In this document: positions 37,353 through 46,400 of the stretch, piece by piece
How positions within the stretch are numbered: the first letter of the stretch is position 1
How the letters are laid out: each line of letters opens with the position of its first letter
The notes under the pieces: model-generated
Told to the model about the DNA's origin: nothing
The model's database searches: none
Seen by the model: the letters and a program-made list of their open reading frames with translations, nothing else
Translations under genes and position numbers: made by a program
Assembly (NCBI GenBank): GCA_051294905.1
Contig: CM119386.1
Coordinates: 8,432,001 to 8,496,000 of the forward strand
DNA: 64,000 bases
Origin: Botryllus schlosseri
Taxonomy: Eukaryota
Direction: 5' to 3'

Positions 37353-37689
37353 CAAAAAGAGTTATAAAAAGTGGGTTTAACACGACTTTACCTGAAACCT
37401 GAGCAGTCAACACAATAACTTGCGGACTCGGACTCGAGTCATAATACCATGTCTCAGACTCAGACTCGACCCTCTGCTCGCTGACTTGGACTCGGACTTT
37501 AATCGGTTTTGAATTGAAAATGACTCGACTTGACTCGAGTCAAAACTATAAAAAGTGACATTGACTTGTGACTCGGAAGTGACTTGGTAACAACCCTGGA
37601 AAAACATTGGTACAGATACATTTCCGGTACCGAAAAGCTTTCCATCCCGTAAATTTTCCACGGCCAATGGCCATCCAACCATCCATCCA

Positions 37690-38240
37690 TCCAAAAAGTT
37701 GCTTCTGAAGAGATTCGGCTTACTAATCATAGAAGATATGCGTGAACTAGAAATCGCCAAGTTTATCAGTTCCACTGTGGTCACTGGCCCGAATATTTTA
37801 ATGAGTTCTTTACCTCGGAATTAAAAGCGCACAAGTACAACACACGCTCGTCGACGCCGTCCAAATATCATATGGTTGATCGAAAAGATCATCGCTCTAT
37901 CAAATATGCCGGACCTGACGTGTGGAACAGTATCCCACTGGCCATCTAACAGTCGACGAGCATATCCATACATTCAAGTCGAAATACAAGCAATTCTACT
38001 GAATAAATACCAGCCCACCCTCTAGATTAGTTGACCACGATCTGACTTATCGATCTCGCTTTCCGTGACATATTACCACCCCATTTTTTGTCGCTTGCTT
38101 TTTATTGTACTGTCTTCTTTTACTTTTACTGTACGTCTCCTCTTTACATCGCCTAGGCCTCGGTGTCTGATGTCAGGGTGTCTGATTCCAAAGACTACTC
38201 CAAGTCGTTTCGACAACTTTCGACCCTATACAACGCTAAT
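37690..38240 (+). mobile_element. 5'-truncated 3' fragment of the LINE family at 55204-57235
   Basis: Reverse-complement similarity to ~55290-55810 (e.g. GAAATCGCCAAGTTTAT, AAATATGCCGGACCTGA, CCTAGGCC). Boundaries approximate. Confidence 0.8.
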
Positions 38241-38626: not shown

Positions 38627-38838
38627 TACATGCCACCTTTATGGGAATCGTGGATAACTTTCCGTTAATTGTTAAAAGTACCCGTGCTAAGTGGTGATTA
38701 GTGTTATATTTCAGAGACGGCAGATTTACTTGATGTGTTTTTTAGTCGAATATCTGTTGACTCGGAACTAAATATGCTCGAGGGAAGTGCTCTGTGGTCC
38801 ATGCGGAGAAAGCCGGATCGCGAAACCGACATCCAGAG

Positions 38839-39642
38839 ACCTATGTGAATCCGGCGGAATATGCTTACGTCATAAATGCGAATTTGCTGATTCATTCTCT
38901 CGCCAATGTTTCGCTCGTCGATGCACGAAATATTCGTCACGGAAATAAATAATTTCATGCGTTGGTGAGAACAAAAGCACGTGTAGAGATACTGACAGGT
39001 CATATATATATATGTAATAGAATGTTACATTACCTATGGTTGTTAAGCGACGGAGTTGAACAATGAAACCGTAAAACTGTAAATTGCGAATAATTCACAA
39101 TGCCGGTAACGAAAGGCATTTCATTTGGTTGGCGACGAAAGGCATTTCATTTGGTTGCGACCATTCAGCCGCGTTACCGGCATTGTGAATTATTCGCAAT
39201 TTACAAGTATTCCGCTGGCTTTCCCTCCGAGGTACTCATTGAATGAATACATTTCCTGGACAGTAGAAGGTCTTATCTACAACATATATGAGTATAATCG
39301 AGCGAAAGGCATTTCAAAATAGAACATTTTGAATTCACAGCTAAGGTTCAAGTCTGACCCTAATCAGGTATCATCAGTAGTACGGTATCATCGTTCAACT
39401 GGTTGTGTAGCATTCAAGCAATAGACTCCGTCGCTGAACAACCATAGGTAATGTAACATTCTATTACATATATATATATGACCTCTTAGCATCTCTACAC
39501 GTGCTTGTGTTCTCACTAATGCATGAAATCTTGTATTTCCGTGACGAATATTTCGTGCATCGACGAGCGAAACATTGGCGAGAGAATGAATCAGCAAATT
39601 CGTATTTATGACGTAAGCATATTCCGCCGGATTCACATAGGT
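38839..39642. mobile_element. Mutator-like (MULE) foldback MITE immediately upstream of POLR2H
   Basis: ~215-bp TIRs ACCTATGTGAATCCGGCGG.../...CCGCCGGATTCACATAGGT; 9-bp direct repeat CATCCAGAG at 38830-38838 and 39643-39651 (alternatively 7-bp ATCCAGA with GACC ends). Confidence 0.85.
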
Positions 39643-39723
39643 CATCCAGAGATTACCGAGAACGAGAATTAGTAAATGAGCAGAAGCATTTGAGGACGGC
39701 GCGGTAGTCTGCAACATTTCGTG

Positions 39724-40173
39724 ATGGCTGGCGTATTGTTTGAAGATATTTTTGATGTGAAAGATGTTGATCCTGAGGGTAAGAAGTTCGACCGTGTGTC
39801 TAGACTTCACTGTGATAGTGAGTCTTTTAAAATGGACTTAATCCTGGATGTCAACACTCAGCTGTACCCGATGGAACTAGGAGACAAGTTCCGTCTTGTA
39901 TTAGCCACGACACTTCAAGATGACGGTGCGCCGGACGACGGAGAATACAATCCGTTATGGGAACAGCAACCATCAAGAGCAGATCAATTTGAGTATGTAA
40001 TGTACGGAAAGGTGTATCGTATCGAAGGAGATGAAAGTGATGTTGCCTCGAGACTTTCGGCATATGTTTCATATGGTGGACTATTGATGAGGTTACAGGG
40101 TGATGCCAATAATTTGCATGGTATGACAATCGACCAGAATATTTATTTATTGATGAAGAAACTGGCTTTCTAG
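39724..40173 (+). CDS. POLR2H: DNA-directed RNA polymerases I, II and III subunit RPABC3 (RPB8), single exon, 149 aa
   Basis: [30 protein letters not shown]...[14 protein letters not shown]...[24 protein letters not shown]...YLLMKKLAF: full-length RPB8. True ATG is at 39724 (the ORF track begins one GTG earlier). Confidence 0.98.
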
Positions 40174-40412
40174 CCAATCTTTGTTTGGAAATGCACTGAA
40201 CCTTAAAAACAACATGGACAATTGGATAAGTCCATGTGGCAATCTGTGATGTCCTTGTTATACAGCAATGTTTGGTTTTCATTTTAGACATTGTTATGTA
40301 ATTATCACTGCCTTTCTGTTGAATCTCGATGATAACTGCTTTATTGTGCTGTTGATTCAACAATGAATTGAATATGATCTGTCTAGTACTGAACCGCCTA
40401 GCCAAATCATGG

Positions 40413-40430
40413 TTTTTCAATCATTTTTAG
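40413..40430 (+). promoter_or_regulatory. Candidate SL trans-splice acceptor for MOB4
   Basis: TTTTTCAATCATTTTTAG ending 36 nt before the MOB4 ATG, inside the presumptive POLR2H 3' UTR; a second acceptor-like TTTGGTTTTCATTTTAG at 40271-40287. Confidence 0.5.
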
Positions 40431-40466
40431 TATGTTGAGAATATCTCTTATTTAATTGAATCCTCT

Positions 40467-43400
40467 ATGGTTGCTGAAAGTGGAACAATGAGTACGGGCC
40501 AAATTCTACGGAGGAATTTACCGGGCACTAAGGCTGCTGTGAGTTGAATTTAATGATCTTTTTTTATTTCACACCTATCAAACTCATGATCGTATATCTG
40601 TATTGTTAATCGTATAATCACTGCAACAAATCTGCTGATTATTATTACTATTACTATTTTTGCGCAAACCACAATTATCTGTTAGCAATCTCTACCTTCT
40701 CGACACCGTCCTATCTTTCATTGTATCACAGTCTTGTGTATAGAAATGATGAAATGGTTTACAATGTATTGAAATTTAAAAGAGAAGTAGATTTTATTAA
40801 TATGAAGCCTGTGCGTATCGTACAGTTTTTGAAAAAAAGACACGAATAGGTTATAGTTGATGATGACGAAGCTTGAACGATTCTGGGGAACTGGATCTGA
40901 TAAAATACCTGACACAAAACTTGAACTATTATTGAATTGGTAGGGGTTGAATTTGTGAAGCATTGCTGTGAACCAGCGTCATTGATGAATGCAATATTCT
41001 CGTGACAATTATACAATATCTGCACGAACCAGGGTTGTAATGACTCGAGTCACGAATTTGTGGTGACTCGACTTGACTCGAGTCATTTTCCCTTTTCAAT
41101 ATTTGGATTGACTCGACTTGTACTCGAGTCATTACGCATGACTCGACCCAAGTCATCGACTCGGCATATTTTATATGACTTGAAGATGAAGAAATTTGCG
41201 AAGCGTACTGGCTAGATCAACGCATATGACGAATTCTGCCAATATCGCTATTTGTCGCCACTGCTTTCGTTGGACTCGTCTGATATCAGAAAAAAACAGA
41301 CGATGGCACATATAGTAGCAAAGCATTGTACAAAATCATCCTGTGATGATGAGGTAATAGATCCTCCGCAATCAAAGTACTCGAGACTTTTCAATTATAC
41401 AAGCAAACAATCGAAGCAAAGTTCAATTAGAGGCAATGAAATGACTCAGATGGTCAAGTACTTGGAAGAGACTGATAAGCTCATGTGTAGATTTGAAGGC
41501 GATGATTCTTTGCATTATTGGGCGACCAGAAATAGTGAGTATCCAATGCTCTTCAATGTGGTTCAAAAATGCTTGTCAATTCCTATATCTTGTGCACCAG
41601 TGAGACGTGTTTCAGTAGATATGGATTTATTCTAAGGCCATGCCGTTATAACATATATGAGGATCTCCTTTCCACTTTATTATTTTTGAATTGTAACTCA
41701 TCATTGATTTGATCTGCTGTCAGTGAAAACACACACAATACACTCCATCCATTTGACGTTTTGTTAGCTATGTGCATTGTGCACGTGAGTTATAATGAAT
41801 GGCTAATGTTGTGTTATGTTTGCACAATAGGGTTGTTCAAAAATAACTTCTTATTTATTTTACTGGGTGGCTACTTGGTAAAATTGTTATGTTGCATAAA
41901 ACGAACACTGAATCTGGCTTAATTTTAAAAAGTAGAATCAATGATATGAGAGAAGAAAATTTTATATCTTAAAATAAAGGGAGTGTTTTTGGTGAGAAAT
42001 TATTTCATATAATATAATTAAATGCTAGTAGTAAGCCGACTATTTTTTCATATCCAAAATATTCCACTCTAATGAATTCACTTTTCCTAGTTGGAATTGA
42101 GCCAAATTTGCTATGAATCATATTTTCACACAATATAACAATATCATGAGGTGGCCGGTAAAATTCGAAAATCTCTATTTGTAGTTAATCCAAAATTTCC
42201 TCTCATATTTGTAACGCTCCGGCGGCTATTTCGGGAGCTGAGCAGGAAAGCTGACCTATTTTTAGTCAACCACCTGATAATGCGAAAGAAAAACTGTAAG
42301 TCTACATAAACAGCATCTATTGATTCTCTATCAGCTGGTATCTAGACGTGAATTCGTTGGTTCTATATCAGATAGCATGTAGAATGAATTCGTTGATTCT
42401 CTATAAGCTATAAGCTAAATCAGGATTGAAAACATGAGTTGAACATGATTCAATACTGTGACTTGGACTCGACTCGAGTCATAACGCTATGACTCGGACT
42501 TGAGCCTTTAAACGGTGACTTGGACTCGGACTCGACTCGGTGATGAATTGAAAATGACTCGACTTGACTCGAGTGAAAACCACAAAAGTAAGATTGACTC
42601 GTGACTCGGAACAATGTGACTTGGTTACAACCCTGGCACGAACTGCACCAGTCGTGTAGGCTACTAGCTAAAATCTGCTCTCTGATGATATCTGATATGA
42701 TACCTGGGAATATACCCCTATATAGCTTTGATTTTTATGCTAAACCATTCTGTTAAGGATTTCTGTGGATGGCCCGATCAGCATTTCGATGAAATGGACA
42801 GCACGCTGGCCGTGCAGCAGCATATCCAGCAAACCATCAGGAAAGATTACACGGATATCGCCAAGATATTAAACGCACCAGACGGTCAAGATGAAGGTGT
42901 TTGGAAATATGAACACTTGAGGTAGATTGATGATACTTCAACAATTTCTTAGTGGCAACATAGGCCTATATTTCTTTCCGAACAGGCAATTCTGTATGGA
43001 GCTCAACGGTCTGGCTGTAAAGTTACAAATGGACTGCACCGCAGAAACATGCTCTCAAATGACTGCCACGGAGCAATGGATCTTTTTGTGTGCCGCACAC
43101 AAAGCACCCAAGGAGTGTCCGGCAATAGACTACACCCGTCACACGCTCGACGGGGCTGCCAGCCTGCTGAACAGTAACAAATATTTCCCCAGCAGGTAGC
43201 TGCTTGGTCTCGGTATATGTACAGTTGAGGCTAGGCAAAAGAATTGGCTATATGATTCACTATATTTTTCGATTTTATATTATACTGTAGGATATCCTAT
43301 AAAAGTGATTTGGTTCTATCAATGACTTTGTGTTCCATCTCTTATATTAGTCCTTATTATCTCCCACAGAACTTATATAGTGTGGCGTCAATACTTTTTA

Positions 43401-46400
43401 CAGAGTTAGCATCAAGGACTCATCTGTGGCAAAACTCGGGTCAGTATGCCGAAGAGTGTATCGTATTTTCTCGCATGCATATTATCACCACAGGCATGTT
43501 TTTGATGAATTTGAGGTAATAGATGGTGGTGTGTTGATTCAACTGGCAATATGAGTATTATTTTGGGTTAATTGCAGAACGAAAGTCATTTGTGTCGGAG
43601 ATTCACAGTGTTTGTGATAAAGTACAGTCTCATGTCGCGGGATAACCTGATTGTCCCCATTCTGGAGGAACCTGCTCTTAAAGTCGGGAGTGAGAAAGAG
43701 ACTACTCCGACTATAACTCTCGCAACACCATCTCACAAACAGGTACTTGCTTTTGCTTGCTAATGTGAGTCAATTGTGATCTCGAACTGACATTTTAAGT
43801 CCTCGAGTGTATATTACATTGAGTTGGGCTTATGATATCGTAGTCTGACATAGCATCAGGTTTGTAGGGGGAGGTCTGAGGAGTAAAATTCATCAGTCCC
43901 TTAAAGTTATATTGCATTATAGTAATGGAATCTATGCTTATAATAAAATTCAATTCCGATCTATCTGAATGCTCTCACTGTGCCAACGAATATCTCTTGA
44001 AATGATATAGAATAATTATTCTACTTATTATTCACAAGTTGTGGTGCAGGCCTATTTCTTTTGTTCAAATAAGATCATGAAAATGTCTCGTTTCACAGGA
44101 GCACGCAGTGGAGGAGCCCTCTGAGAACTCAGATGCATCTGTAACGGGGGAAAGCGAGGTCAGATTAAGATTAAGTAACCCCTTGATACCTAGAAGCTTT
44201 GAATATGTCAAAGATGGTTTTCTGAACATTTTGATAACACCATTTCTGATGAATTGGCTTCTCCATTCTGCGATTAATAAGCATACTACATAAATAAATC
44301 ATTAGAAAAATTGCAAGAGGTCGCCGTTATACTGTAGAAGAAGTCACGAAAATTGAGCGTCCGGCAAATGTTGCTTTCTTTTCACAGCATTCGCCGGCCC
44401 AGACTGAATTCGAAGCCAACATTCGGAAGCAGCTGGGCCTCTCGCCCGAAATATCTCTACTCTCCTCGACTGTCATCGAGACGCCGACGGAGGACGGCCT
44501 GGACGATGACTCGGTGAGTTGATATTTCTTTGCAGTGCCTTAACCAGTCAGTTTACATGGCCACCAACCGTTGACATCTTGAATGTACCATCTCCAACTC
44601 CGGAAACTTTAAACACACTGACACTGCAGCTATACTTTCTTCACAGAACTCACACATTCTTGTAAATCTACTCGGAAATGATGCTGCTATTACATTTTTA
44701 GTTACTATTAATATTATTATCAAGTAAATCAACATACTTATTTGAGTTCAAAAATTCTTCCAAGCAGGAAGTAAGTAAAAAATTTAATAACTTCTGTAGC
44801 TGCAACGACACTTTTTGGTAACATTTGATAGACATTTGGTTTGATTTTGAAGTCTGTGGTAGTAATAGTCGGTAGGAAATTTAGCAAAACTGCAACTTTA
44901 CATCGTCGGAATTGCGATTACGATGTTCGTCGTAGTTTGAGACAGCGCCACTGGCTCATGTTTTGAAACTGTTGTTTTGTTAACCATCAATTACTTTTCA
45001 ACTAAGTTATCCATAATTTCAACTGTTTATTAGGGATGGTGTGAACGTGAGGTTCACGTTCGCGTTCTGTGTGTGAACCTCAGAAATTTAGAGGTTCACG
45101 TTCACAAGCGAACCTTGGTAGGTTCTGCACTGTGAACCTTTTTCATACATTACAATTTTCACTTCATTATAACATCTTACGTTGAAATTTATTGCATTTC
45201 AACTGCGGGCCACTCTATGCATGGCGCTGGCGGCATAAAATTCAACACTAAACGAGCATGCACCTTGACAATCTCAAAATTTTACCTGCTTTGTTACAAA
45301 AGTTGGCTTGAAATATCCAGTTTTCCGTCTGTGAATATTTAGTGACTCTCTGTGAGCTTGACCCGCAATCACGCAACATCAAGAGCGAAAAACACTGTAG
45401 TCATCGGATGATGCTTATTCAACCAATCAATGAATTTGATATTGTTGTGTGATGTAAAAATATCTAGCAGGCATATGGGCTTAATCTTGACTGTATATGT
45501 TTATTGTATCGTAAAAGTCAAATCCGTGCGATTTGGGTGTTAACTGCTGCTGTGTATAACCCGATAATGGGGTAATATCGGTAGCAAGTATAGAACCCCG
45601 TCTTATACTCTGCTGAATATCAACGTAGAAATACTCAGACGCCGAATACATTTGTCCGGTCTGGCCTAGACCGTTGAGGCGTAAGCTTACATTCCCTTGC
45701 CAGTCCTCGTCGAAATTGTTGGCAAATCGACGGAAGATATTGATTTTATGGTATTGTTGTATCATCTGTTTGGCCTAGTTGATACATTTGGCGAAGTTCA
45801 AATCATCACTATGTACTTCAGTATTGTGGTATAATGTGGCCTGAGCCGTCCCTACATTGATATAGGCCATCATTTCACTGAAATGTAGGGTTGGAATTAG
45901 CAATATGACGTCATGAGGTTCACGTTCGCGTTCACACAGAACCTTTCAGAAAGGTTCGCGTTCACACGAACCTGACCCTTTCAGAGGTTCACACCATCCC
46001 TACTGTTTATTCATGTGTGACTACTACGTTGTGTACAAAGTCAACTTTTACTTTGCCGGCAAATTGGATTACGGTGTTGATATATGCAGAATGTCGATGT
46101 TCTGTAGATTTCAATACTTGAATGGCCGTTCGATGGTACTCCACTTGAAGATTGCTTTCATCGCAAGACACATTAATATGACTTGAAGACTTCTCGTGTT
46201 ATCGGCTCACTAAATGTATTCAAACAGATTCAAAAGTGAAAGCAACATGGCAGAATATAATGTAACTATCGAAATTACGGTCCACTGATATTCGCATTGT
46301 AGCGATATGCCTGTCATTTTATCATATGTCCTCGTTTAGGATCTGTCCTCTTCTCCAAAAAAGTGAATGGTCCTCCAAGGATGCCCAAACGCTCTTTTTT

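Follow-up and report, generated by a model that had tools for sequence, protein, structure and literature searches.

A 64,000-nucleotide (nt) stretch of contig CM119386.1 from the ascidian Botryllus schlosseri (the window, to whose first letter all positions refer) carries an intronless gene for the RNA polymerase subunit RPB8 (POLR2H) directly ahead of the gene for the phocein protein MOB4, both on the + strand. The POLR2H gene has lost both of its ancestral introns, stands at a new location, is held by purifying selection and shares its place ahead of MOB4 with one related species. We propose, with about even confidence, that the locus is a dicistronic operon of the Ciona type, resolved by spliced-leader (SL) trans-splicing, and that it is of recent origin, having formed when an intronless POLR2H was fixed just upstream of the MOB4 acceptor. 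We infer from the arrangement of the sequence that the two genes are co-transcribed, that MOB4 receives the SL and where the POLR2H mRNA has its 3' end. Such a dicistronic unit had been suggested in an earlier note on this DNA, and the features on which it relied, namely the shared strand, the 293 bp from stop to ATG, the lack of AATAAA and ATTAAA in that interval and an acceptor 36 nt before the ATG, were all found where it had placed them. Its ascription of the DNA to an ascidian was likewise borne out, as the closest POLR2H and MOB4 proteins were those of Styela clava, Ciona and Phallusia, indicating the affinity of a stolidobranch ascidian near Styela.

The coding sequence of POLR2H (also RPABC3; 39724-40173, + strand) is an uninterrupted open reading frame (ORF) of 149 codons ending in a TAG at 40171-40173, and the Pfam family RNA_pol_Rpb8 (PF03870, E 5.6e-57) covered it over the full profile. 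The encoded protein was 97% identical to the Logan protein P0001 and 85-87% identical to the proteins of Ciona and Phallusia, and the Styela clava protein XP_039254717 belonged to the same 90% cluster as P0001. The gene has three coding exons in Ciona (141, 150 and 168 nt) and in Styela clava (138, 150 and 168 nt), interrupted in both species by two identically placed phase-0 introns, after ...NTQ and ...MYGK, and both of these introns were precisely absent from the window gene. Nonsynonymous divergence (dN) between the window gene and that of Styela was only 0.056 while synonymous divergence (dS) was saturated, and by these criteria the copy is a working gene under strong purifying selection. 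An exact look-up of the window protein in a collection of 15 billion proteins returned no match, and a scan of metagenomes for POLR2H relatives gave 80 loci, none closer than 86% and none with MOB4 nearby. An ORF of 189 amino acids (aa) on the antisense strand (39851-40420) had no family match above the cut-off and was rejected as spurious.

Downstream, the first MOB4 exon (40467-40538, + strand) comprises 24 codons from the ATG at 40467 and is followed by the donor GTGAGT, and exons 2 to 5 (42758-42921, 42986-43195, 43404-43515 and 43578-43742, + strand) encode the conserved Mob1/phocein core. Joined, the five exons gave a continuous core of 241 aa that matched the Pfam family Mob1_phocein and was 90% identical to the Logan transcript protein P0293, 83% identical to Styela clava MOB4 and 79% identical to Ciona MOB4; no MOB4 found in the protein collection exceeded 90% identity.

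The gap between the POLR2H stop and the MOB4 ATG measures exactly 293 nt (40174-40466). Its first 257 nt (40174-40430, + strand) form an AT-rich spacer with a GC content of 0.35 and a CpG observed/expected ratio (CpG o/e) of 0.26, not repeated elsewhere in the window; this spacer would be the POLR2H 3' untranslated region (UTR) in an operon and the promoter plus outron of MOB4 if the two genes were separate units. The spacer ends in the candidate SL trans-splice acceptor TTTTTCAATCATTTTTAG (40413-40430, + strand), whose AG at 40429-40430 lies 36 nt before the MOB4 ATG, and trans-splicing there would leave a predicted MOB4 5' UTR of 36 nt (40431-40466, + strand). A second T-rich, acceptor-like site, GGTTTTCATTTTAG (40274-40287, + strand, AG ending at 40287), was considered as the main acceptor and rejected, since a MOB4 mRNA beginning at 40288 would retain six upstream ATGs and position 40288 is thus unlikely to be a mature 5' end. 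Sites of this class, defined as an AG that has a pyrimidine at -3 and 12 or more T among the 20 nt ahead of it, occurred at 0.22-0.36 per kb per strand in the window, so that the two in the gap, where about 0.06-0.1 would be expected, represent a roughly 20-fold excess. No TATA-like hexamer was found in the spacer. The 300 nt 5' of POLR2H had a CpG o/e of 1.5-1.6, and the contrast between this CpG-rich upstream region and the CpG-depleted spacer weakly favours a single promoter ahead of POLR2H.

Comparison with other ascidians indicated, from gene order, that the adjacency of POLR2H and MOB4 is derived and not ancestral. MOB4 is divergent from SLBP in Ciona intestinalis, lies 4.5 kb from an opposite-strand DUF5524 gene in Clavelina lepadiformis and lies 2 kb from an opposite-strand sulfotransferase gene in Styela clava. 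No POLR2H was detected by tblastn within 10 kb of MOB4 in Ciona or Clavelina, and none is annotated beside S. clava MOB4, where the six-frame ORFs of the locus matched only the MOB4 exons of the window. POLR2H itself sits between NUP214 and Mpv17 in Styela and adjoins a p450 gene in Ciona, and none of these neighbours was present in the 64-kb window. The pair did recur in a related species, in which a 5022-nt Logan genomic contig (the source of P0001; SRR25569784) holds an intronless POLR2H at 325-774 and, on the same strand, a 65-aa ORF (P0388, 1432-1629) that corresponds to MOB4 exon 2 with its intron flanks. In that contig, MOB4 exon 2 lies only about 675 nt beyond the POLR2H stop, a distance that includes the spacer, exon 1 and intron 1. 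Its exon 2 differed from that of the window at 8 of 54 residues, meaning that the tight pair has persisted through substantial divergence. The expectation of the earlier note that other tunicates would share the arrangement thus held for this one relative and failed for Ciona, Clavelina and Styela clava. Its further suggestion of a functional coupling between the polymerase and STRIPAK found no support, because the pairing is lineage-specific, being absent from those same three ascidians, and because the partners in Ciona operons are reported to be neither functionally related nor tightly co-expressed (PMC1488885).

The acceptor ahead of MOB4 is probably older than its pairing with POLR2H, judging by its spread among ascidians. 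An acceptor-like AG was present 5-36 nt ahead of the MOB4 ATG in every ascidian sequence that we examined: a pyrimidine-AG preceded the ATG by 28 nt in Ciona, in Clavelina and in a Styela-like transcript (L006), by 33 nt in another transcript (L005), by 5 nt in S. clava and by 36 or 27 nt in the window. This suggested that MOB4 may be generally trans-spliced in ascidians and that POLR2H would have come to lie upstream of an existing acceptor. Outside coding sequence, the spacer and the 5' flank showed no nucleotide similarity to Styela clava, Ciona or Clavelina, and an ancestral outron or promoter is untraceable on either side of POLR2H because the non-coding sequence is too diverged to align.

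In the proposed operon, a promoter 5' of the intronless POLR2H, probably in or next to the CpG-rich arm of a foldback element described below, would drive one transcript through POLR2H into MOB4. From each transcript molecule, either a POLR2H mRNA would be made, with its 3' end forming at or just before the acceptor, or the SL would be joined at the AG ending at 40430 (or at 40439) to give a capped MOB4 mRNA. As to its origin, MOB4 would beforehand have possessed a trans-splice acceptor about 30 nt ahead of its ATG, and an intronless, probably retroposed, POLR2H copy would have been fixed inside the MOB4 outron or beside it, no more than about 260 nt ahead of that acceptor. Such a landing site would have let the copy use transcription entering MOB4, and selection would have kept it as a working gene. 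The precise loss of both introns together with the new location is the signature of retroposition, and the window POLR2H is on this pattern probably a processed copy; relocation followed by recombination-mediated intron loss is a possible alternative route. The copy may have landed either inside the MOB4 outron, which would have made an operon instantly, or upstream of the MOB4 promoter. The most specific form of this history, in which a processed POLR2H landed in the outron of an already trans-spliced MOB4, was expressed at once from the host promoter, replaced the three-exon gene and was locked into the pair through speciation, is offered tentatively, as somewhat improbable when taken whole.

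The closest known systems are the operons of Ciona intestinalis/robusta (Satou et al. 2006, 2008), such as DTL-URM1-CHERP and KHOP.805 with Rpl21. They share with the window locus an ascidian host, unrelated housekeeping genes on the same strand, a single-exon 5'-most gene, the lack of AATAAA near the junction and a T-rich, unpaired AG shortly before the downstream ATG. The background on which the earlier note had drawn, that Ciona cistrons abut and that first genes are frequently single-exon, was confirmed in the literature (PMC1488885, PMC2760879): cistrons of Ciona operons adjoin directly with no intercistronic DNA, 16 of 18 operons have no AATAAA within 40 nt of the upstream 3' end (PMC1488885), and 60% of operons have a single-exon 5'-most gene, an excess that Satou et al. 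2008 called unexplained (PMC2760879). Every hallmark of Ciona operons that can be read from sequence alone (strand, short spacing, absence of AATAAA and a single-exon first gene) was present at the locus. The window locus differs from the Ciona operons in that its junction is only predicted and its genome is larger and richer in transposons, and the pair itself is nonexistent in Ciona, where POLR2H has its three coding exons by the p450 gene and MOB4 its divergent partner SLBP. The SL1-type operons of Caenorhabditis elegans likewise have no intercistronic sequence, the upstream 3' end coincides with the downstream trans-splice site, a precursor gives one mRNA or the other and a general SL resolves them; they differ in keeping a canonical AATAAA, as a passage of PMC1488885 discusses, and in their independent origin in another phylum. 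Functional retrogenes resemble the window POLR2H in the precise loss of all coding introns, the new location, the intact ORF under purifying selection and the reliance on regulation at the landing site, and differ in that a poly(A) tract, a target-site duplication and a parental copy are not demonstrated for the window gene. At the vertebrate HSPE1-MOB4 read-through locus, MOB4 likewise follows immediately after a small housekeeping gene of the same orientation; there, however, the upstream gene is another one, SL trans-splicing is absent, and the read-through either is resolved by cis-splicing or is an annotation of rare transcripts. Many vertebrate database entries (P0321, P0346, P0349, P0352 and others) fuse Cpn10/HSPE1 (PF00166) with MOB4 (PF03637), a consequence of this known locus.

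The ascidian SL reads …TTTGAATAAG. The mRNA contig of POLR2H from another ascidian (L001) starts with TGTTTGAATAAG, which matches the last 12 nt of a Ciona SL variant (PMC1488885, Table 1). The same contig holds, at 544-735, an ORF of 63 codons (MPRNNVLLL...) that begins 33 nt past the POLR2H stop and might be a second cistron or just 3' UTR. SL trans-splicing is documented in ascidians (PMC1488885) and, according to a citation in a passage of PMC3691228, has been reported for the styelid Botryllus; for the host lineage of the window it is probable by taxonomic placement, the nearest proteins being ascidian. A search of the window for an SL RNA gene or an SL relic gave only matches at the level of chance. 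MOB4 transcripts were sought with a profile of a full-length representative plus the window exons, which yielded contigs from other ascidian species (L005, L006, L007, L009 and L010), all lacking an SL. The leader of the contig from the Styela-like species (L006:1-200) is 200 nt long, and two AATAAA in it precede the acceptor-like TTTTTAATAG by about 37 nt, with the MOB4 ATG following 28 nt after that site; this leader is possibly the 3' UTR of an upstream gene running into MOB4, as would be seen in unresolved polycistronic RNA.

Several observations weigh against an operon. The missing AATAAA was rejected as an informative sign, because 65-69% of the 293-nt stretches of the window also lacked both hexamers and their absence from the gap is expected by chance in two thirds of stretches. 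Use of the main predicted acceptor would leave an upstream ATG at 40432, opening a 7-codon upstream ORF at 40432-40455 (ATG TTG AGA ATA TCT CTT ATT TAA); a weaker, minor AG at 40438-40439 (+ strand) would yield a 27-nt MOB4 leader without an upstream ATG. The 257 nt of spacer is sufficient for a core promoter and a short outron, because outrons in Ciona peak near 100 bp (PMC4691747). The marks of a retrocopy were not found around the window POLR2H, where the longest A run after the stop was 5 nt and there were no flanking direct repeats or target-site duplication and no SL relic; the loss of a poly(A) tract and target-site duplication is expected for an old event, and retroposition is still compatible with it. 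No SL stood at the 5' ends of the relatives' MOB4 contigs L005, L006, L007 and L010, which run 18-170 nt beyond the acceptor-like AG. Lastly, the fuhc-sec and fuhc-tm genes of Botryllus schlosseri (PMC3691228), likewise styelid and lying on the same strand with a short, featureless spacer of 227 bp, were suspected to form an operon, but 5' rapid amplification of cDNA ends and primer extension found no downstream SL and linked transcripts were rare. In our analysis, this pair is a cautionary counter-example to inferring an operon from spacing alone.

A substantial, minority possibility is that POLR2H and MOB4 are two independent, closely spaced tandem units. POLR2H would then end at a non-canonical poly(A) site in the spacer, MOB4 would have a core promoter of its own, placed either there or within the last part of the POLR2H coding sequence, and the MOB4 mRNA would be either trans-spliced after a short outron or not trans-spliced. 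The outrons of non-operon trans-spliced genes in Ciona peak near 100 bp, with many under 500 bp (PMC4691747), and the claim of the earlier note that the gap leaves little room for a separate promoter was overstated in the light of these lengths and of the 227-bp Botryllus spacer without an SL-resolved junction (PMC3691228). That the downstream mRNA of the fuhc pair, behind such a featureless spacer, bears no SL is itself a point for separate units. Trans-splice sites are present in about 79% of the Ciona genes outside operons (PMC11155486), so that an operon does not follow from an acceptor by itself. MOB4 clearly has its own promoter in Ciona, Clavelina and S. clava, where the upstream neighbours are divergent or distant, and an ancestral MOB4 promoter therefore existed near the gene. 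The relatives' MOB4 contigs would also fit, as they carry leaders of 53-200 nt without an SL; three of these contigs begin with a Nextera adapter, and the leaders could not be aligned to the window. Where reads of the precursor are present, de Bruijn assembly is prone to trimming short SL tips, and these contigs therefore neither support nor refute trans-splicing. On the other side, a promoter in the spacer would have to lie in AT-rich sequence that lacks a TATA-like hexamer and has a CpG o/e of 0.26, in contrast to the CpG-rich DNA ahead of POLR2H, and the 257 nt would have to fit the POLR2H 3' UTR and poly(A) site as well as a promoter and an outron. Moreover, pairs that satisfy the Ciona rule (same strand, less than 100 bp between gene models) are nearly always annotated operons (72% of downstream genes with 5'-full-length expressed sequence tags; PMC2760879).

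It is improbable, by our estimate, that POLR2H is instead nested in a 5' intron of MOB4, with a non-coding first exon upstream being cis-spliced to the acceptor at 40430 and POLR2H either having a promoter to itself or being produced from the shared transcript through alternative polyadenylation. The AG at 40430 would serve equally well as a cis or a trans acceptor and weak donor-like sites do occur 5' of the POLR2H ATG (for example TTA|GTAAAT near 39671), but no convincing upstream exon or strong donor was found. In Ciona, Clavelina, L005 and L006 the acceptor-like AG and the ATG are similarly spaced, and the transcript contigs continue through this AG colinear and unspliced with no sign of an upstream exon; in an organism with SL trans-splicing, an unpaired acceptor is the simpler reading. 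That the real POLR2H gene is elsewhere, and that the ORF in front of MOB4 is a processed copy placed there by chance and either redundant or without function, would agree with the intronless state and new location of this ORF but is very improbable given its full length and full-profile Pfam match, the dN to Styela of only 0.056 against saturated dS, and the related species, which has an undamaged intronless gene with 97% protein identity although its MOB4 exon 2 departs from that of the window at 8 of 54 residues.

By itself, an SL-resolved POLR2H-MOB4 operon would add a single candidate to the large number that an ascidian genome should contain (in Ciona, 10-20% of genes belong to operons; PMC2760879, PMC11155486), and of a kind already known. 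The locus stands out because both stages in the formation of a candidate operon with an intronless first gene can be compared and their order is known: Ciona, Clavelina and Styela clava represent the ancestral state and one relative shares the derived state. If correct, the proposal would provide a dated example of how tunicate operons gain single-exon first genes, and it could bear on the capture of retrogenes by outrons as a route to operon formation in chordates. Our literature search found no paper that connects ascidian operons with POLR2H, with MOB4 or with retrogenes.

Ahead of POLR2H lies a foldback element of 806 nt (38838-39643, no strand assigned). Its arms, each of 219 nt (38838-39056 and 39425-39643), show 95% complementarity and enclose a core of 368 nt, within which there are an inverted repeat of 34 nt without mismatch (39078-39111 and 39172-39205) and a tandem duplication of 23 nt. 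The right arm stops 80 nt before the POLR2H ATG and has a CpG o/e of 1.6, making it a possible promoter region. Both arms are CpG-rich and carry the TGACGTAA motif, which is CRE-like (resembling a cAMP response element). Self-BLAST found no second copy of the element in the 64-kb window, and it may represent a transposon or else promoter sequence duplicated in inverted orientation. The remaining 80 nt of 5' flank (39644-39723, + strand) had a CpG o/e of 1.5 and contained neither a T-rich acceptor nor an SL relic.

Within MOB4, intron 1 (40539-42757, + strand) is enlarged to 2219 nt by the remnant of a hAT-type transposon, which accounts for most of its length; an ORF at 41252-41635 matched the hAT C-terminal dimerisation domain (Pfam PF05699, E 1.3e-6), and GACTCGAGTC-rich repeat blocks flank the remnant at about 41040-41160 and 42460-42610. 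A repeat block related to these was also seen near 37400-37700. Further MOB4 exons encoding an acidic C-terminal tail were placed tentatively at about 44099-44159, at 44388-44509 and from 46864 (+ strand), by tblastn of P0293 and blastn of L005 with predicted splice sites, and the 3' UTR extends, also tentatively, to at least 47878. Ascidian MOB4 proteins (P0323, P0344, P0369, P0391) are 330-390 aa long compared with about 225 aa in most animals, the extra length being a long, acidic, low-complexity C-terminal tail from additional exons in Ciona, Clavelina, Phallusia, Styela and the window. Inside a late MOB4 intron, at 45030-45990, a segment of about 0.9 kb is enclosed by GGTTCACG-rich terminal repeats in inverted orientation (about 45035-45140 and about 45910-45995) and is probably another non-autonomous DNA transposon.

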